This document shows, piece after piece, positions 6,770-43,297 of a stretch of 64,000 bases of DNA; positions within the stretch are counted from its first letter, which is position 1; every line of letters starts with the position of its first letter. The position numbers were made by a program, and so were the translations under genes. This DNA comes from Camelus ferus. Its lineage: Eukaryota. The notes under the pieces were generated by a model. That model ran no database searches. It had not been told where the DNA came from and saw nothing but the letters and a program-made list of their open reading frames with translations. The DNA lies in assembly GCF_009834535.1 (NCBI RefSeq), contig NC_045699.1, forward strand, positions 74,586,001 through 74,650,000. Direction: 5' to 3'.

Positions 6770-7560
6770 CACCTTTATTGCGGTATAAGTATTGTACACA
6801 ACACTATACATAGTCCGATGTACAGTTTGAAGAATTCTGACAGATGTGCACACCCACGACACCACCGCCACAATCAAGACAGCTAGCACTTCCATCTCTC
6901 CCCAGGAGGTGACAATTTCTACTTCCCAATTAATCCCTCCCCACCCCCTTTCCCCCCTGGTAACCGTAAGTTTGTTCTCTATGTCTGTGAGCCTGTTTCT
7001 GTTCTGTAGATGAGTTCNNNNNNNNNNNNNNNNNNNNNNNNNNNNNNNNNNNNNNNNNNNNNNNNNNNNNNNNNNNNNNNNNNNNNNNNNNNNNNNNNNN
7101 NNNNNNNNNNNNNNNNNNNNNNNNNNNNNNNNNNNNNNNNNNNNNNNNNNNNNNNNNNNNNNNNNNNNNNNNNNNNNNNNNNNNNNNNNNNNNNNNNNNN
7201 NNNNNNNNGCCATCTGTCAATGGACACTAAGGTTGCTTCCACGTCTTGGCTGCTGTAAATAGTGCTGCTGTGAACACTGGGGTGCGTGCGTCTTTTCGAA
7301 TTATATTTTCCTCCAGATACATGCCCAGAAGTGGGATTCCTGGATCATAGTTCAACTCTATTTTTAATTTTTTAAAGGAATCTCCACACCGTTTTCCACA
7401 GTGGCTGCACCAAACAACATTCCCACCAGCAGTGCAGGAGGGTTCCCTTTTCGCCACAGCCTCTCCAGCATTTATTGTTTGTGGACTTTGTAATGATGGC
7501 CGTTCTGGCTGGCGTGAGGCGGTACCTCAGTGTGGTTTTGATTTGCATTTCTCTGACTAG
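6770..7560 (-). mobile_element. LINE-1 fragments (antisense), interrupted by an assembly gap
   Basis: The minus-strand ORF track gives L1 ORF2-like text ([42 protein letters not shown]) plus L1 3' UTR motifs. Confidence 0.85.
7018..7208. other. assembly gap (191 N)
   Basis: Run of N. Confidence 1.
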
Positions 7561-20290: not shown

Positions 20291-21095
20291 CGCACCAAAA
20301 AGAGATTAACAATAATTTTTTTTAAACCTAAAAAGAGTGTTGCCAAAATGTTGACTTTTGTGTAATAATAATAAAAAAGTTTTTAATGAAGAAACAATCG
20401 GTCATGGCATTGAATTTCTTCCCAAATCCTTATGTGAGTAAAATCTCTTCGGGTCAAAGTCTGTGTGGACAAGGTGGCAGTCGATGGTCTGTGGCAGTGA
20501 TTTCTTCTGTCTGGCTCCAGCTCTTTCCAGGTCTCCTGCGACGAGCAGGCCCTGCTCCCACACAGCAAGGGGGGCAGCGTCGCGTCTGGAAGATGCTGGA
20601 GGACGCATTCTGTCGTGGAGAATGTCCCTGTGCGGAGGGGTCTCTGCATCACAGCAAACGCTGGCTGAGAACTGACTACACAGAGAGGAACGTCCCCTTA
20701 ACGCAGTTATTACCCCTACTTGAGAAGGATGTATTCTTCCCTGCCTGCTGTTAACTCTTTATTGAAAATGTAAGCTGAACACCAAGTGGAGCACCACCAT
20801 CACCGTCACCCCACCCCTCGCCAGCCTCGTCTGTCTTTCCCGCCTCCGCCCCAGCCCTCATCTGTGGCCAGAGGACGGTCAGTCCGACTCCAAGCATGGC
20901 CTCTGGGTCAGGGCCAGCAAGGGCTCCCCCGCCTGCTCCCACCTGGAACTGCCCTCTCGGGGTCTGCTCTGCTTCCCTGCCCAGCTCTCGTCCACACCCT
21001 GGGCTGGGCATCCTCCCCTCCCTCCATGGCCTGGCAGGATGCCTGAGAACAGAAAATCTGCTCTGTAACTTGTCACGAGTATATAAATGGCTCCC

Positions 21096-21176
21096 GGGAG
21101 GAGGGGTGGAGAGTAGAACGCATGCTTAGCATACACGAGGTCCTGAGTTCAATCCCCAGGACCGCCATAAAAAAGA
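21096..21176 (+). mobile_element. Vic-1-like SINE
   Basis: GTAGAACGCATGCTTAGCATACACGAGGTCCTGAGTTCAATCCCCAGGACCGCCATAAAAAAG. Confidence 0.75.
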
Positions 21177-21190
21177 TTTTGTATTTAAAT

Positions 21191-21319
21191 TCTTTTTTCT
21201 TTTTTTTTTGGAGGGGATAATTAGGTTTTTTGGGTTTTTTTAATGGAGGTACTGGGGATTGGACCCAGGACTTAATGCATGCGAAGCATACACTTTACCA
21301 CTGAGCTACACTCTCCCCC
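21191..21319 (-). mobile_element. Vic-1-like SINE, full length
   Basis: Reverse complement reads GGGGAGAGTGTAGCTCAGTGGTAAAGTGTATGCTTCGCATGCATTAAGTCCTGGGTCCAATCCCCAGTACCTCCATTAAAA...CCTAATTA plus an A tail. Confidence 0.85.
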
Positions 21320-21490
21320 AATTTCTTTTAATTAAAAACGAAAAACAAAAAAATGGCTCTCAAATAAAGACACAGGGAGGGCTATCTGGGCATTCCCAGC
21401 ATTCAGGCCGAGACTGGGGTCCCAGGACACCCACCGCCCTGTTCCTTGACTACAGATGACTCGGGAATTCAGGGCAAACATGGCAAGGCC

Positions 21491-29698: not shown

Positions 29699-29704
29699 AA
29701 TAAA
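29699..29704 (+). terminator. poly(A) signal of MRPS2
   Basis: First AATAAA seen after the stop, about 465 nt downstream. Confidence 0.65.
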
Positions 29705-31582
29705 ACTGGGCTTCCAGCAGGACGGTGCCCGGACCATCAGGTCTGCAGTGTGGTCTGTGCTCTTGTCTCTGCTCGCCCCCGGGAGCGCACAAGACTCATC
29801 TGTGCCCTCTGGTGCTCTGGCTTCGGGAGGCAGACGTGCAGACGTGTTGGGTGGGAGGGCGGAGGCCCTGGCTGTGCCTTGGCACCGTCCTCCGTGCTGG
29901 GGCTCGGAGGCCTTGGGACCTGCCCGCGTCCTGAATGGTCAGGAAGGACGTACGGACGCTCGTTCCCGGGTTTCCTGGGTGCTCCCTCGTCAGTGAGGCC
30001 TGGGGTGAGGTGCGGGCCGCTCTTTCCGGGAGCCTGCCCTGTGGCGCTCAGCACGTTCGCTCCCGGTGTGCCTGACCGCCCCCGGGAACCTGTCTGCTGG
30101 CGAGGGTCTGTGAGGGCGGGGCAGGCTGGCGCACGGGGGCAGGAAGCCGAGTCCTGGGGTCCACTCAGCGTCTCCTTTCAGAGAGGGGGTGCGTGCTGGA
30201 GGTTCCTGGTGTTCTCTGGAGACACGCTGGGTTCCTGGTTCAGAAGGTGCAGGAAACCGAGCGTCTCTTTGAAAGCACCGACTGACCAGTCTTGCTTTGA
30301 TTTGCAAACGTGAAGTATGAAGATGCAGATCTGTAGGCAGGTAAACCGAGGGGCCCCCCCCAGGGCTTCCCCCCACTGGAGACCCCGTGTGTGGGTGTGG
30401 GTGAGTTTCCCCGAGCAGGTGGCCTGTGGGGAGAGCCAGCAGGGCCGCCCCTCGGCGTTCAGGGAGACCCCCTGTGGGAGCCGAGGGCCTGGAGATGAGC
30501 ACAGTGTGGAAATGCTTCCTGGCCGTCCATGCACAGGAGTTCCCGGAGCACAAACTGGGCCTCCCCAAGGCTGCAGGGGGTCCACACCACCCCTCAGAAG
30601 CGGGCATTTAGGGCACCACAGGCAGCCTGGGGGCGGTGAGTGACACGCAGGGAGACATGAGTACACAGGAGCCGTGGGACTGGCTGGAGGGGAGCAGCCC
30701 GGGGGGACAGACTCCCTGGAGCACCCCTGCCTCACCCCATTCCCTAGGGGACCCTAGGATACTTAGAACCCGCTATGGATCCAGGCAGTGAAGACCAGCA
30801 GGGGCGACAGCAGTGTCTGAGTCACTGGCTGTGCTTCCAGCCCGGGTGCTGGGGGCAGGGTGGGCAGGAGCGGCGTACCCAGTGGGTGTCCCAGTGGACA
30901 AGCAGAAGCAAATGAGCCCGATGGGTCCAGCTGCACGAGGACCAGAGCCAGGGTCGGGGCCTCTCTGGGAAGAGCAGCGAGGGGACCAGAGGGGCTCAGG
31001 TTGACGGAGCGGGCGTGGCCTCAGCCCTGCGGGAGGGCACCTCCAAGTTTGCCTCCCTGGCGGTGAACCCCAAGAGATGCCAGAAGCTCTGAAGGGGGTG
31101 AATGCGCCTAGCCTTGGGGGCACGAGAGGAAGGGCCGCCCCCGAGCCCTCGACTTGCCCTTTATGCCTGAGCTCTGGGCCCTGCCCGCTGGCCCCGCAGG
31201 CGCCTGGAAGAGCCGGGCTCCGGACTGGGCAGGTGCACCACGCCCCCAGCCTGGGCCAGGACAAGCCTAGGGCGACCGTGGGCACAGAGGGTCTCCAGAA
31301 CCAGGCCTCGGGATGGCTGTGACCAGACGCCACCCAGACACCTCCCCAGGGCCCCGCCCAGGGCTTCGCCTCTTGAGTGCCCAGTCCCCCGCCAAGAAGC
31401 TGGGCCCCTCCCTTCACCCACCAGTGCCGTCCACCCCGGGCCTAGGCCGGGTGCGAAGACAGTTTGCACGTATTTGTAAGGCTGACCGAGACAAGTCTTT
31501 GTGTGCTGTTGCGTTTCAGGATGTGAACATGGATATTTGGGGATTGTTTTTGAACTGCCTTTCCTTTGAAAATTGGCCCCCG

Positions 31583-33865
31583 TGTGAGAATGAGTCAGCC
31601 CTGAACCCGTGAGAGACCTGGGGTGGGGGTGGGGGTCACAGCAGACCCCGGGGGGGAGCTGGCGGCGCGCCTGGTGCCTGCCTTCCAGGGCAGCGACCTC
31701 TCCTATGTCACCATCTTCCTGTGCACCTACCGAGCCTTCACCACCACGCAGCAGGTCCTGGACCTGCTCTTCAAAAGGTGAGCCCCCGCCCGCCTCCTGG
31801 CCGTGTGACTTGGGAGCGCCACTTCAGCCTCGCCGAGGCTCCGTTTGCGCCTGTGAAGGCCGGGCTGCCCAGAGGCCCGGCCGCACGGGGCTGGCAGGAC
31901 ATCGGGTGAGCGTGCACGGCGCGACCCTGTGCCCGGCCCTGCGGGAAGGGCTGCCGGGGCACGTGCGGTTCTTCCTGAGGGTTTCCTCTCCCCCGCAAAG
32001 AAGCCCCCGCCCTTAGGCAGGGCTGTCTTCCCGTTTGTGAAGGAGGTTCCGGGTTCCGTCGCGGGGCGGGGGCCCTCCCAGAGCAGGGGTCACTGGGCGC
32101 TGGCTGAGCCCACTCAGATAGCTGTAAGGGGCCGACTCGGGGCTACACACGGGGCCCCCACTGTGCGCAGGCGCTGTTTCAGGCCTTTGGCGTAAGTCAG
32201 TGACTGGGGCAGATGGAAACCCCTGCCCTCCCGGGGTTCCACCCTGGTCGGGGGGTCAGCCAGTAACACCGGACGTCACAGCAGGTACGGTAGATGTGAC
32301 GCCCTCACGGCCTCCTCTAGATACGGATGCATCCTCCCGTACTCCGACCAGGACGGCGGGCCCCAGGACCAGCTGAGAAAGTGAGTAGGCTTTGGGTCTG
32401 ATGGAGGGGCCTCCTGTCTCCAAGATGGGGACTTTGTGGGGCTGAGGCTGCGGAGGGGCTGGGCAGGGCTGAGGTCTGGGGGCCTCTCCTGCGGGAGGAA
32501 AGGAGTCAGGGAGCTGTGGCTGGGGTCCTGAGTCCCCAGGGAGAAGAGGGGAGGCTGGGGGCTCAGAGCCGCCCCCTGAGAACATCCATCCCCTCCCAGA
32601 TCTGGGGCCCAGGACAGGAGATGTGAGGGGCGAGCTGCTCACACGTCGGCCTCGTGCCCCAGTGTGAGTGCTCGGCTGGGGCTCACGAGAGCTCAGTCGG
32701 GGCTCGGGGGCCGGCCGTGTTCCCAATCCCGAGAAAAGTGTCACTGGGGTAATGAGGCTGACACGCGGTGCGGAGACAAAGGCAGCCCTTCGGGGCTGAG
32801 CTGCAGGCTCAGGTGCGCGAGGCCCAGGAGAGCCAGGCAGGGGCCACGCTCTGCTCGTCCCCTCCTCCCTCACACACTCATGCAGCACCTGCCGTGTGCC
32901 GGCCAGGCCAGTGTGATGGAGTAGACGTGACCCTCCCTGCCCTCCTGCAGTTTCCCACTCCAGTGAGGAGGGCCTGGGGTCGGACAGGAGTGAGTCAGGT
33001 TCCCTGAGAAAGGGAGAGGTGGTCACCACGGATGGAAGGCTCCCTCCCACGGAGACTGCCCGCCCCACCTGCTGACCAGGCTGCCCCTGTCTGGGTGGGC
33101 TGGGGCGGGGCTGGCCTCCGGATGGGCAGGGATGGGCCCCAACACCCAGCCGCCTTGGAGGTGCCATGGGAGGGCAGTGCAGAAAGAAAGCCCAGGCCTC
33201 TGACTCTGTCGTGCCCCGTCCCCCACCACTGCCTACCCCCAGTGCCATCTCCTCCATCCTGGGTACCTGGCTGGACCAGCACTCAGAGGCCTTCTGTCAG
33301 CCACCGGACTTCCCCTGCCTCAAGCAGCCGGTGGCCTACATGCAGCTCAACATGCCTGGCTCTGACCTGGAGCACCGCGCCCAGCTTCTCCTGGCCCAGC
33401 TGGAGCATGCTGACCTCACCGAGACAGAGCCAGAGGGTGAGGAGATCCCGGGGAGGGGGGTTGAGCACGTGGGGAGGGGCCCCAGAGGCCGCTGCTGGGC
33501 AGTAGCAGAGGCGGGCCTCAGACCACTGGCGTGCTGGACCACAGGCGGGGAAGTCGCCCTGTGCCGGATTCTCGTGCCAAGGCTCCTGTAAAAGGCGGCA
33601 GGACGTTTTCTGTCTTTGGAAAGGCACCATTTGGAAGGCGGGCATGTCCATCTCCTCTGTGGCTTCACCGCTGTCTCAGCGTCTCATGATGGCTCCAGCA
33701 CCAGCTCCGGGACCATCTGAAGATCTGGACCAGCCACAGAAGCACCAGCAGAACTGAAGCCAGAACCAGAGCCAGAGGCATCTCCATCAACAGGTGCGCC
33801 AGGGTGGGAGCCAACAGCACTGTCAGTCCCATCAGCACCTCTGCGGCTGGAGCCCGGCGCGGCGG
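31583..33865 (+). pseudogene. unprocessed, truncated RALGDS duplicate (REM-domain exons): 31583-31777, 32285/32321-32380, 33243-33436, degenerate Pro/Ala/Glu-rich exon at about 33690-33865
   Basis: Translations CENESALNP*ET, LVPAFQGSDLSYVTIFLCTYRAFTTTQQVLDLLFKR, YGRCDALTASSRYGCILPYSDQDGGPQDQLRN and AISSILGTWLDQHSEAFCQPPDFPCLKQPVAYMQLNMPGSDLEHRAQLLLAQLEH closely match recalled RALGDS. Introns are retained with GT-AG. There is a TGA at 31610-31612, a +1 frameshift before 31671 and no AG at the expected first acceptor. No CDC25 or RA-domain exons were found. Confidence 0.88.
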
Positions 33866-34019
33866 GGACAAGGCCCCGTGGGAGGCCACCCTCAACTCGC
33901 TGCCCCAGGACGTCCCTTCCCTCTCTTGTTTCTGTTTTTGTTTTTAATTTTACTTTCCCCTTTCATGTTATTTGTGATGCTTTTTATCTTATGTCTTAAT
34001 ACAATCAAGCTTAACTTTT

Positions 34020-34275
34020 TAACTTTATATTGAGCACTTGAGGAGCGCGTAGTCCACTCACGTGACCTTCAGGCCTGTCTCAGAGCCGACCGCCTCACTC
34101 CCCAGAAGGAAGCGCTGGACGGAAAGCCGTCGCCCCCCGGCCCTCCCTCCCCCGCCCCCCACACCCCCTAACCTGCTTTCTGTCTCTGTGTCTTTCCCTG
34201 TTCTGGATGTTTCCATAAACGGAATCGTGCAACACGCAGCTTTTTGTGTGTCTATTTTGAGAGAATAGTTCACTT
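34020..34275 (-). mobile_element. LINE-1 3' fragment
   Basis: The minus strand reads TQKAACCTIPFMETSRTGKDTETESRL, typical of old L1M 3' ends. Confidence 0.65.
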
Positions 34276-34849
34276 TTGTTTTTTTTTTATACCTGAAATA
34301 GCACTTCTGTTACATGAAGGGGAAATCCCGATGGAGTAAAGGTGGAATGCACAGAGTGAAGTCCTTTCGGCAAACACGTGCACAGTCTCAGGGCAGAGAC
34401 CCCGTTCTAAGTGTGACAGCAGCTCCCGATGACAGAAGGGACACGCCCGGCTCCTCCCGGGCCGAACAAAACCGCGAGAAACGCGGAGAGAGCGGGTGAG
34501 GCCGCACCCAGACCTGAGCTGCGCTCCTCACGCCCAGCAGAGAGAGGGCGGACCCCCCTGCGGGCCCCGAACTCTCCAAAGTCAGTGCTTTTAAAACATG
34601 CAATTCCAACGAGAGGCCGCACACGTGGTCAGTACGTGTCAGAGACGCTTGACCTCACTGATGGGGACACGCAGACGTAACCACTGTGGAGACAGCACCG
34701 GCCACCGTCACACTGGCAGGTTCCTCGTCTGGAGGTGACCAGCCCTGGGGACGACGTGAGGGGCAGAGGCCCCCCGGGCCCCCCAGAGGGAGGTGTGGAG
34801 GACACGCCTCTCTGGGAGAACCGTGTGCATGCTGCGGCGCTAAGCCTAG

Positions 34850-36339: not shown

Positions 36340-36498
36340 GGAGTGTGTGTCTGTGCTTGTCTGTGTATCTGTGCGTATGTGTGCGTGTCCGTGTGTCTGT
36401 CTACGTGTGTCTGTGTGTCTCTGTGTGTGTCTGTGTGTCTGTCTGTGTGTCTCTGTGTGTCTGTGTGTCTGTGTGTCTGTGCATATGTGTGTGTGTCC
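36340..36498. repeat. (TGTGTC)n/(TG)n simple repeat running into a gap
   Basis: TGTGTCTGTGTGTCT arrays directly visible. Confidence 0.85.
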
Positions 36499-36824
36499 NN
36501 NNNNNNNNNNNNNNNNNNNNNNNNNNNNNNNNNNNNNNNNNNNNNNNNNNNNNNNNNNNNNNNNNNNNNNNNNNNNNNNNNNNNNNNNNNNNNNNNNNNN
36601 NNNNNNNNNNNNNNNNNNNNNNNNNNNNNNNNNNNNNNNNNNNNNNNNNNNNNNNNNNNNNNNNNNNNNNNNNNNNNNNNNNNNNNNNNNNNNNNNNNNN
36701 NNNNNNNNNNNNNNNNNNNNNNNNNNNNNNNNNNNNNNNNNNNNNNNNNNNNNNNNNNNNNNNNNNNNNNNNNNNNNNNNNNNNNNNNNNNNNNNNNNNN
36801 NNNNNNNNNNNNNNNNNNNNNNNN
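36499..36824. other. assembly gap (326 N)
   Basis: Run of N. Confidence 1.
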
Positions 36825-39800: not shown

Positions 39801-40749
39801 GTGTCCTGCTGTCCCCATCCTGGTGGGCCTGGGCCAGCCTGGCCCCTTCCTGCGTCCTCCACTGGGGGCTCCCCTCACTCCTGCCTCGGCCTCCAGCCAG
39901 CGGGGAGCCAGGGGGCCAGGCCATTCCCACCTGCACAGGTGACCCCACCTGAGGACTGGAGCTGACCCTGTCATCCTCACACCCCTCCCCCCACCCCCAG
40001 GACCAGGGAGACCCGGAGCTTCACGGGCGTCAGACCTGCAGGAACCCCCACGGGACCTCGGGCAGGGCTGCCGGCACCCACCTCTCCCCTGACTCTCATG
40101 CCTCTTGGACTGAGACAGGACCAGGGAGACCCAGGACAGCAGGGGTCCTCCCACCCTTCCACCCCGCGTCCACACCCCCTCCCGGTCCCAGCCCACCTGA
40201 GGGACCCCACAGACAAGCAGAGCCACCGAGGATGCGGAAGCTCTTTATGTGAAGCCAGGAGAAGGGGTAGGGGGCTGGGGGAGGAGGGGGAGATGGGGAC
40301 GCCGAAGGGGGCGAAGCTGCCCAGGCCCCCGGGACAGGGCTCCTTCCAGGTCCTGTGGCACAGAGGTCCTGGTGGTGCTGCCACTGGGTGCTCCCTGCCC
40401 TGGAAAGGGGTGGGGGTCATGAGCCAGGATGGCAGAGGGGGAGGGGGCTGCAGTGGAGAACCAGGTGCGGGGCTCTCGAGGGCTCAGCAGGAGGGATTTC
40501 CCACCTGCTGGGGGCGCAGCTGTGGGGATACGGCAGGGCCGACAGCCTCCCTCCTGCACCCAGCCCACGGAGTGCTCACCCAAAGCAGATCTCCCAGCCA
40601 CCCAGGCTCCCCGAGACAGCCGGGAGGCATGGCCCACGTGCAGGGGCCCCGCCTGCCTGGCCCAGGAGGGGTCTCCTGCCCCGCGGGGAGCAGGGCTGGG
40701 AGACCGACCCTGTGGCCTCTCAAGCGTCCTCTCCCGCTGCTTACTTACC

Positions 40750-43297
40750 CTAGGCTTCTGGAGAGCAGGTTTCTGCAGAAAGAGGAAACACAGTTCAGAA
40801 GAGCCAGGGAATCCGCTGGCCCAGGGCCCCTTCGCCAGCTGACACTTCACTTGACCCAGAAGGACAAGCCCGGACCAGAGGTGGGCTGTCCAGTCAGGTG
40901 TGCTCTGCTGACAGGGCCACCGGGGCAGCCGGGCAGGAGCGGGCACGGGCGTTCCTCCTACCGCTTTGCCGGGGGATGAAGACCTCCAGGTGTAGCCCCT
41001 TGGCTTCTGCGACCTTCTTGAAGTCCTCCAAGGCCCCTGCGTTGTTCTCAGGGTCCCTTCCTGTGGGGGAGACCGGGAGCCAGACGGGAGGGTGAGGGTA
41101 GTAGTGGGGGGCACCGGCATCTCCATCCCAGTCTGGAGGAGTGATGGGCCGAAGGCTGGCTTGGAGGACCCCGCACCCGTGTGGGGCTGGACCCCGGGGT
41201 CCTCGGCGGCCGGGAAGAGAGCTCGGCTGGAAAGGTCGATCCAGGAGCCTCCGGAGGGCTGGGGCGCCCTCGCAGCAGAGCTGGGAGGGGCGGGAAGTGC
41301 TCTTGGAGGACACGCCTGAGACTCTGCCTGGGAGTGAGGACCTGCCTGGCTTCAGAGGTGGCGCAACCGTCTCCGGCCCTCAGGTCCCTGCCGTCCCCCC
41401 GGACTGGCATTCACACAGCTCCTGGCCATGGGGACACTCAGGTGACCCTCTCGGGGGCCTCCCGTCTGCAGGCAGGGACGGAACTGACGCTCCAGTGCCT
41501 CTTTGAGCCTCCTCCCTGGAATTAAGCCCCAGGGGCTGGAATCCCCTTCCCACATGTGGCCCGCCTGTGACACGGTGACATTCGGATGCCTGCCCACTCG
41601 GCCTCTGCTCCTCCCGTGCGCCCCTGCCGAGATGGGACTGGGCGCCTGCATCCTGAACTGGGCGTGGGAACCAGTGCTTCCTCCCGGGGCGTCTCCTGAG
41701 GGCAGGCGGGGGGAGGGGGTGCAGGGGCTGGGACGCGGGACCCTCACCCATGAGCTTCGCCACGCGGATCTGCTTCCCGCCGAGCTCGCCTTCGCAGTAA
41801 AGGATGTAGTGGTCCTTCACCGCTGACGGTGTGATGTACACCACGCGCTTGCCCCCGTCTGGAGGGGGAGGGCCCAGCCTTGAGCAAGCCCAGGGCCCGC
41901 CGGGAGCAGGTTCTCCACCCAGGCCGTGGGGCCCCACCTCCCAGGAGAGCGCACGCCAGAGAGGTAGTCACACCCCGCCCAGCGGGTCACAGGGGGCCTT
42001 GGGGGGTGGGGGCTCCAAGAGGCTGGAGCCTGGGGAGCTCAGCTCCGCTTCTGGGCCTGACATGTGGCCGCCCTGACCTCGGGCGGGCCAGTCCCTCCTG
42101 GGACAAACCCATCAGCCTGGTACGTGGTGTCAGGTGTCCGTATCTTTAAGGCAAATCGACCAGTGGGAGGGGAGGGAGGTCATTCAATGGGGTCAGAAAG
42201 GAGGGGGGCTTCTCAGGCTCAAAGGCTGTCCTAGACGCACCCCCACCCCCCACCCCGGCTGGGGCTCTGGGACTCACAGGCCGTGTATTTGCCAGGCTCG
42301 CTGGCTCTCTCCAGGACCAGTGTCTTGTCCCGGCACTGACCGTCAATCCTGGGACAGAAGCCACACAGCGACGCTGCCTGGGGTGCGCCCACCTTGGAAC
42401 CCAGCCCAGCCCCGGCAGCGCTCCCCCACCCTCACAGGCGGCCACGGGGAGGACAGTGCATCAGCCACCCCCAGTCCAGACACCAGCTGGGCCGTCAGTG
42501 TCTCACATGGCAGCTCCGGGGGTCTCCCTTGGTGGTGGGGAGGGGCAGCCGGCAGTGCTCTTCCCATCCACAAGGTCTCACCCGGGCTCATCCCCTGCAC
42601 GGCTACTCCGGGTGAGGCAGGGCGCCCTCAAAGCTGTCCAGTGCCGAGCGTGGTGGGAGGGGCTGGGAAGGACACCTGCGTGGTCCGCCCACCCCACCCA
42701 GACGCTGGCTGTCCTGGTGTGGGGCGGGGAAGCGGGGAGGCCGGCGGCGACACTCACAGAATGGTGGCCTGGACTTCCAGGTTGCCTCCCTCCAGGACCG
42801 TAAGGTTCATGGAAGTCACCGACTCTGGTTTCTTCATGGGAATCTCCTGGTCTGCGGTCGCGGCCTTCAGATACCATTTCCCTGACACCTGGAGAAGGCT
42901 CCCTCCAGTCAGGGCTCAGGTGCCACCCCCCACTCTGCAGCCCCAGACTCTGCCCAACCCTGGGGCTGGAGCTCAGTGTGCTTTCCTGCCCCGCCCCCAG
43001 CAAATGCCCAGCATCCTCGCCAGACACCCCCAAGTGTGGGCTCCAGCCCTGCAGCTCAGCCCGGACCATGGGCCCCCTGTCTGGCTCAGGGCCCTCTGCT
43101 TCGTCTGACCGTTGCCTCAGGGGCAGGGATCAACGCCCAACCCTAAGATGCACGCCTCCGCCTCTCTCTGCACACCCCCAGCCCAGCCTGTCCCATCAGA
43201 GCCTCACGTCCTGGCCCAGCCCGCCTGAGGCCGGGGGGTCCTGGGCCTGCAGGGCAGCAACGAGGCCGAGGCTGACGGTCAGGAGCAGGGTCCTCAT
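40750..43297 (-). CDS. LCN1: Lipocalin-1 (tear lipocalin / von Ebner gland protein / Can f 1-like), 174 aa; coding exons 43208-43297, 42758-42888, 42278-42348, 41748-41858, 40962-41060, 40750-40772; non-coding last exon from about 40352
   Basis: [174 protein letters not shown]. Has a signal peptide, the GxW motif and lipocalin exon phases 0,2,1,1,1 (525 nt). Closer to LCN1 than OBP2; exact orthology among LCN1 paralogues is not resolved. Confidence 0.9.

Follow-up and report, generated by a model that had tools for sequence, protein, structure and literature searches.

This study concerns a 64,000-nucleotide stretch of the Camelus ferus genome (contig NC_045699.1, positions 74,586,001 to 74,650,000; hereafter the window, to which all coordinates without a locus name refer) and, within it, a broken piece of RALGDS, here termed the relic, that lies downstream of MRPS2 and on the same strand. 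The core of the relic (31577-33865, plus strand) consists of four successive RALGDS exons, which we call A to D, together with their parental introns (Table 1). A note made earlier from the letters alone had proposed four consecutive RALGDS-like exons with native introns at this place, and an exon-intron-exon alignment to the complete primate RALGDS locus that served as our parent reference (L006, from Pygathrix, which holds GBGT1 and then RALGDS) bears this out. The relic lies 1.88 kb beyond the MRPS2 polyadenylation signal AATAAA (29699-29704), in agreement with the roughly 1.9 kb and the shared strand given in that note.

A tblastn comparison of a primate RALGDS N-terminal model (P0042) with the window gave E=2e-28 at 33241-33411, E=1.6e-18 at 31656-31778 and E=3e-15 at 32283-32378, and exons A to C have 86-91% amino-acid identity to the primate RALGDS model. 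Exon C shares 87.7% identity with the parent of the primate and 88.2% with that of the ruminant. Exon A alone (31650-31778) matches the Pfam profile RasGEF_N (PF00618) with E=1.6e-10 over profile positions 10-49 of 106; the camel relic gives no match to the whole profile, and gene models from whales, described below, cover positions 1-104 of 106. On translation, three clean pieces of the REM domain are obtained, in order ...LVPAFQGSDLSYVTIFLCTYRAFTTTQQVLDLLFKR; (YGRCDALTASSR)YGCILPYSDQDGGPQDQLRK; and NAISSILGTWLDQHSEAFCQPPDFPCLKQPVAYMQLNMPGSDLEHRAQLLLAQLEHADLTETEPE, where YGRCDALTASSR is what the long form of exon B (start 32285) adds. Single-exon sequence searches of PDB gave marginal matches to the SOS REM domain (E ~0.4) or none. 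The native junctions of exons A to D carry canonical splice dinucleotides, the exception being exon A's own acceptor, which is lost (AG to CG). The 42 nucleotides that open the long form of exon B (32285-32326, an alternative 12-codon insert) are identical in the camel relic, in both whale relics and in the primate parent; the intron flanking this block is 23-40% different among the copies. RALGDS-like exons are thus confirmed by sequence similarity at these positions, far above chance.

Table 1. Coordinates of the RALGDS-derived pieces, the upstream neighbour and the last exon of the annotated camel models in the window
Feature	Position	Strand	Remarks
MRPS2 coding region and 3' untranslated region, to AATAAA	26035..29704	+	Upstream neighbour; Pfam Ribosomal_S2 gene call in the collinear C. 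bactrianus locus (L001 4357-7544)
RALGDS CDC25-domain exon scrap	31016..31087	+	Reads LREGTSKFASLAVNPKRCQKL and then a stop; blastn 85.7% to L006 54919-54981, E ~1e-12; 83% to ruminant L008 4241-4312
3' half of the exon preceding exon A (31218-31272) and start of its intron	31218..31437	+	Local alignment to L006 46892-47079
Exon A, first half of REM domain	31577..31777	+	31577-31649 garbled; 31650-31777 intact; donor GT at 31778; 80% to L006 48807-49020
Exon B	32285 (long form) or 32321 (short form) to 32380	+	Donor GT at 32381; two parental acceptors retained
Exon C, second half of REM region	33243..33436	+	Frame open; donor GT at 33437; tblastn E=2e-28
Exon D, 5' part, Pro/Ala/Glu-rich, decayed	33699..33865	+	Starts after CAG; parental similarity gone by ~33865
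Terminal coding exon of RefSeq-style camel models (P0003, P0104)	33624..33757	+	New acceptor AG at 33622-33623, 75 nucleotides upstream of native exon D acceptor

Introns and order of the pieces

The parental similarity of the relic is not confined to its exons. Aligned with the primate locus, the window is 80% identical over exon A, 81% over exon B with its flanks, 80% over an intron segment and 79% over exon C with 146 nucleotides of upstream intron; the intron stretches that align include 32465-32530 and 33097-33242, and intron lengths are similar to those of the parent. A parental match also persists in the intron stretch directly upstream of exon D (33608-33647), and a whale relic copy aligns contiguously to the primate locus over 1,089 nucleotides. 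Because the parental introns are kept at their native positions and their sequence aligns, we regard the relic as a DNA-level copy and not a retrocopy, as the earlier note had reasoned. Its expectation that the copy decays in the Pro/Ala/Glu-rich exon and ends ahead of the catalytic exons also holds: exon D carries a TGA (33755-33757) in the frame continued from exon C, similarity fades by ~33865, and in the window alignment to RALGDS neither the remaining 3' part of exon D nor the CDC25 exons that follow it had a match, the only CDC25 sequence being a misplaced scrap upstream.

This scrap is one of two further pieces of RALGDS, both upstream of exon A, so that the extent proposed earlier (31583-33865) was right in placing four exons there but too small for the relic as a whole. 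The scrap is the start of a CDC25-domain exon (LREGTSKFASLAVNPKR...) that the parent has 4 kb downstream of its exon D. Whales have an orthologous scrap (L002 9435-9503), abutted there by a second copy of the exon B region; a second exon B copy upstream of the scrap was not above shuffled background in camel. The other piece, from the exon that precedes exon A, scored 72 in local alignment as compared to 27.9 +/- 4.6 (maximum 47) in 200 shuffles. It is also present in both whales, with the GTGAGT donor retained in right whale, and the remainder of the 1.9-kb intron that follows it has been deleted in the relic. The pieces follow one another as CDC25 scrap, preceding exon, A, B, C, D, an order different from the parental one, which implies that there were two partial copies or that the copy was rearranged internally and then suffered deletions.

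Presence in camels and whales

Chromosome CM109909.1 of Camelus bactrianus matches the window at 98.5-99.3% identity, and the gene calls there are PIERCE1 (minus strand), MRPS2 (plus), a 195-amino-acid product (plus) and a lipocalin (minus). In right whale and gray whale, PIERCE1 (minus) and MRPS2 (plus) are followed by a REM-containing “RALGDS-like” gene (plus). The interval from MRPS2 to the relic is collinear with the window in all of these, at 98.5% identity in C. bactrianus and 72-73% in the whales, and camel and whales have in common both the misplaced CDC25 scrap and the truncated exon ahead of exon A. Since the same mosaic follows MRPS2 in both lineages, the relic predates the split between them. 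The camelid-whale split is the basal split of the artiodactyls, roughly 60 million years or more ago. The exon A acceptor is lost in camel, right whale and gray whale alike, and the other lesions at the 5' end differ by lineage: camel has a cluster with a TGA and a frameshift, gray whale a TAA and right whale a 2-bp deletion. The stretch at ~34020, just past the relic, where the earlier note had placed an L1 fragment, is single-copy in all sequences compared and is orthologous in whales, which neither confirms nor refutes that assignment. Judged from these alignments the relic is neither recent nor private, being shared with baleen whales.

The same observations bear on the suggestion that a misassembled piece of the true RALGDS was placed beside MRPS2, for which the high protein similarity to RALGDS (86-91%) is the only support. 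The junctions recur in an independent chromosome-level assembly of C. bactrianus and in two whale assemblies, 81-89% of the region's 31-mers are present in more than 20 DNA runs of two organisms, and the copy has private lesions and the out-of-order scrap. The earlier note had asked for a look at Bactrian camel, where the relic is indeed found, collinear after MRPS2, and had allowed that no intact RALGDS might exist elsewhere; a published gene-order table lists for C. bactrianus a separate RALGDS, by CEL and GBGT1 (Yamamoto et al. 2017, PMC5571153). With the MRPS2-relic junction collinear in C. bactrianus and both whales, misassembly is effectively refuted, and we give it next to no credence.

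Several observations outside the camel locus touch on the relic. RALGDS fragments exist in stoat and chinchilla, for which orthology to the camel relic could not be shown. In stoat (Mustela erminea), a “RALGDS-like” locus (L004:7019-12000 and 20974-21401) contains scrambled RALGDS pieces, namely the linker before the RA domain, the first-exon region and exon C. About 9 kb beyond them lies, inverted, sequence homologous to window 34124-34829. This is possibly the same neighbourhood, in which case the origin of the relic would reach back beyond artiodactyls. In the whales, 2-4 kb past the relic (L002:13977-15970 and L003:14732-16700), ~2 kb of repeated sequence resembles exon D on the opposite strand; this may be an expanded inverted array or a simple low-complexity similarity.

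Disabling lesions and rates of change

The 5' end of exon A is badly damaged in camel. Alignment to the whale copies and the primate parent shows the parental acceptor CCCCAG/TAT changed to CCCCCG/TGT, a TGA in frame at 31610-31612 together with a 1-nucleotide insertion, and a G-rich stretch of ~55 nucleotides that is heavily substituted, the first REM helix (TLEKLVEHL) being gone. The absent acceptor, the TGA at 31610 and the +1 frameshift noted earlier can thus all be seen. The original frame from the upstream RALGDS exons is lost in the relic, no in-frame ATG was found upstream of the camel REM frame, and no RA-domain sequence was found in or near the relic, where the CDC25 sequence amounts to the 72-nucleotide scrap. 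The absence of a catalytic CDC25 domain and of an RA domain means that the relic is not an exchange factor of the RalGDS family (RALGDS, RGL1-3), and the garbled first helix means that in camel it could not yield a whole REM module. It had been proposed that, if expressed, the copy would encode an isolated REM module with no guanine nucleotide exchange factor activity; the second half of this stands and the first does not, as the camel REM domain is incomplete. In camel we would therefore expect no working exchange factor and no complete REM domain, and at most a spliced, probably non-coding or junk-coding transcript.

The locus has been annotated as protein-coding in several species. The camel models, LOC105068620 (C. 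bactrianus, P0003) and LOC116663377 (C. ferus, P0104), map to the window at 98-100% per exon. They use GT-AG introns foreign to RALGDS (31451/31615, 31906/32320 and 33437/33623) and, from an out-of-frame start, read exon A out of frame via a new donor at 31906; a Pfam scan of P0003 gave no match. The whale models, named “RALGDS-like” (right whale P0033, blue whale P0093, gray whale P0025), begin at accidental or upstream ATGs. These RefSeq/Gnomon models correspond to the relic in locus and in exons B and C, but they are mutually inconsistent predictions, with an annotated open reading frame that differs between species.

We consider that the relic is an unprocessed (DNA-duplicated) partial pseudogene of RALGDS, and place the probability of this at roughly 0.78. 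It combines a lost acceptor, the TGA at 31610, a +1 insertion and the TGA at 33755 with the absence of catalytic and RA exons. The relic shares with the RALGDS parent the places of its introns, parts of their sequence and the two alternative acceptors of exon B; unlike the parent, it is without the first coding exons, nearly all of the CDC25 exons and the RA domain, contains stops and a frameshift, and lies beside MRPS2, whereas RALGDS lies between CEL and GBGT1.

A number of observations weigh against a simple pseudogene. When changes were assigned to lineages in a triplet of camel, right whale and primate parent (Fisher test), camel-specific change was 6.2% in exons A to C vs 12.1% in introns (P=4e-4), and whale-specific change was 1.7% vs 6.2% (P=1e-4). 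When changes were mapped onto codons 8-139, with a neutral expectation of 1:3 for synonymous to non-synonymous changes, 10 synonymous and 9 non-synonymous ones fell on the camel branch outside the garbled stretch (a departure from neutrality at P=0.008), corresponding to a ratio of non-synonymous to synonymous rates (dN/dS) of ~0.3. The 42 invariant nucleotides of exon B are the same in every copy. The right whale model spans the full RasGEF_N domain, and the blue whale model reads exon A intact. The camel and whale models share the new last acceptor, the right whale model P0033 using one homologous to camel 33622-33623, which would be unusual if prediction were driven by homology alone. RNA libraries labelled “reproductive system metagenome” contain 64-75% of the 31-mers of 31200-34200. 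Finally, the steps of local origin and of gene conversion discussed below are ones we infer, the parents compared being those of a primate and a ruminant.

The shared new acceptor and the 31-mers in RNA libraries make transcription of the relic possible, although, as four fifths of 31200-34200 is intron, those 31-mers may represent DNA carry-over or unspliced RNA. A 952-nucleotide transcript contig (L007, Logan SRR22936539) is a spliced RALGDS-type transcript that keeps the intron after exon C. In it a Cys replaces the Tyr before ENES, as in the camel relic and a hyena model, and it shares an SSVDGG motif with the relic models of gray and blue whale; an assignment to parent or relic was not possible. 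A match in a camel expressed sequence tag paper proved to be Rgl2.

The slower change of the exons, a third to a half of the rate in introns, points to past coding constraint or to gene conversion by the parent. For instance, the relic might be a working, or recently working, REM-only gene, whose RasGEF N-terminal module would serve as a decoy or regulator of RALGDS or Ras, be kept by selection in artiodactyls and still be coding in some baleen whales. Exons that change 2-4 times slower than introns, the dN/dS of the camel branch and the right and blue whale models with their full RasGEF_N domain would be in line with such a gene, and the architecture recurs in a diverged REM-only RALGDS-like family annotated in many mammals. 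The camel copy, though, has lost its first REM helix, its acceptor and its frame, and the REM frame has no in-frame ATG ahead of it; the start of the exon carries a stop in gray whale and a frameshift in right whale; and the annotated reading frames differ from species to species. The whale stem has 0 synonymous and 6 non-synonymous changes and gray whale 1 and 3, so that 9 of 10 whale exon changes are non-synonymous (9 vs 1), as expected without protein constraint. With all relic branches pooled there are 11 synonymous and 18 non-synonymous changes (P=0.076). We regard a working gene of this kind as very unlikely.

Alternatively, a neutral pseudogene might have stayed parent-like in its exons solely through repeated gene conversion from RALGDS, nearby on the same strand, as it would still be in whales, where the published gene order is RALGDS-GBGT1-MRPS2 (PMC5571153). 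The whale exons, with 1 synonymous change in ~100 sites vs 5-6% change in introns, and with mostly non-synonymous changes, fit a reset followed by drift, and the divergence of the camel copy, now distant from the parent, is 3-4 times that of the whale copy. Further support, which the partial-pseudogene reading shares, comes from the introns flanking exon C, compared in a quartet of camel relic, whale relic, primate parent and ruminant parent, the last being a RALGDS contig (L008) from a gut metagenome. The informative sites were 15 (relics together), 13 (whale relic with ruminant parent) and 7, essentially a star; there is thus no long relic-specific stem, and the histories of relic and parent parted at about the artiodactyl radiation. 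This could be because the duplication took place then, or because conversion homogenised the copies until then. Conversion should, though, have homogenised the flanking introns, and these differ from the ruminant and primate parents about as orthologues do; nor does it predict that synonymous change in camel (~10%) equals the intron rate. As a sole explanation we find conversion unlikely.

Within the partial-pseudogene reading that we prefer, the slower change of exons than of introns would be a trace of constraint in the past or of conversion from RALGDS. Taken together, these comparisons suggest that the relic was not neutral throughout and is now decaying separately in each lineage. The slow exon change offers a small but concrete test case for gene conversion vs residual selection.

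Proposed origin at a rearranged boundary, and related copies

The blocks from ABO to MRPS2 and from FAM69B to KCNT1 have been repeatedly inverted or translocated in mammals, with MRPS2, GBGT1 and ABO at block ends and lipocalins of the LCN1/3/4 type at junctions (Yamamoto et al. 2017, PMC5571153). The camel relic sits exactly at the MRPS2 boundary, an end of the rearranged blocks, and in this resembles the breakpoint-associated gene fragments of that study. The study differs from ours in treating glycosyltransferase and lipocalin genes: its Supplementary Table 2 has LOC105068620 after MRPS2 in the C. bactrianus column, in the table only and without comment. The same column separately lists “...CEL, (tRNA), RALGDS, GBGT1, LCN9...”, so that the locus was already annotated and a separate parent is on record. 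The relic is ordinary in kind and not new as an annotation; it is older, more scrambled and slower-decaying than expected.

The cetacean columns of the same table give, in this order, RALGDS, GBGT1, MRPS2, C9orf116 and PPP1R26. In the primate locus GBGT1 lies upstream of RALGDS on the same strand; given this and the position of the relic downstream of MRPS2, the whale relic should sit between MRPS2 and GBGT1, on the parent's strand. We propose that in a stem-artiodactyl (or older) ancestor part of RALGDS was duplicated locally while MRPS2 adjoined GBGT1-RALGDS, an order still present in cetaceans, carnivores and rodents, and that the mosaic is what deletions and rearrangement afterwards spared. 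A later, published rearrangement of this region, which is prone to breakpoints, would in camelids have moved MRPS2 and the relic away from the parent and to the lipocalin genes; we suggest that this was event XIV of PMC5571153, which joined the GLT6D1/LCN side to GBGT1. The interest of the relic lies chiefly in annotation and in the reconstruction of genome history. It is a shared, dated marker for the MRPS2 side of this repeatedly rearranged region, and one that indicates that camels moved a piece of the RALGDS neighbourhood along with MRPS2. The camel locus, now labelled as protein-coding “uncharacterized” or “RALGDS-like” with inconsistent models, should be treated as a pseudogene.

The relic is not the only partial copy of RALGDS in mammals. 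A diverged REM-only RALGDS-like family is annotated in camel, pig, toothed whales, bats, carnivores, rhino, elephant and tree shrew (P0097, P0106, P0111, P0148, P0096, P0100, P0102, P0113, P0117 and P0118). Its camel member (L011:10001-16129, on another chromosome, Camelus ferus CM020778.1) is a partial copy of RALGDS that has kept introns, and its exons share 70-75% identity with those of the parent. Like the relic, the genes of this family are partial copies that retain introns, extend from the exon upstream of A to the Pro/Ala/Glu exon and lack a catalytic domain. They differ in being much older, 50-64% identical to the parent in protein and 70-75% in exon DNA. In a FastTree tree of the REM region (22 sequences) the relics group with the parent on short branches and the diverged family falls in separate clades. 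We found no paper on REM-only RALGDS-like genes, and the recurrence of such copies, in the relic and in the diverged family, hints at a seemingly unexamined class of genes. A bolder proposal would be that REM-only RALGDS derivatives are a real mammalian class of catalytically dead Ras-to-Ral modulators, and that selection maintained the MRPS2-adjacent copy for tens of millions of years, with coding retained to this day in some baleen whales and lost only recently in camels; from the comparisons made here we hold this to be unlikely.

Past the relic, the next called gene in the collinear C. bactrianus locus is a lipocalin, corresponding to window 40745-43291 on the minus strand, with LCN1 in the published table. 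Between the two, at 36343-36498, a minisatellite-like repeat abuts a run of N (36499-36824); it resembles the tandem repeat of RALGDS intron 1 (L006 35200-35700) and is probably a generic GC-rich repeat. A further run of N occupies 7018-7208. In the primate reference locus, the last, catalytic exon of Pygathrix GBGT1 (L006:5366-6132) contains two overlapping open reading frames in different frames, which suggests a frameshift, reflecting either a pseudogene or an assembly error.

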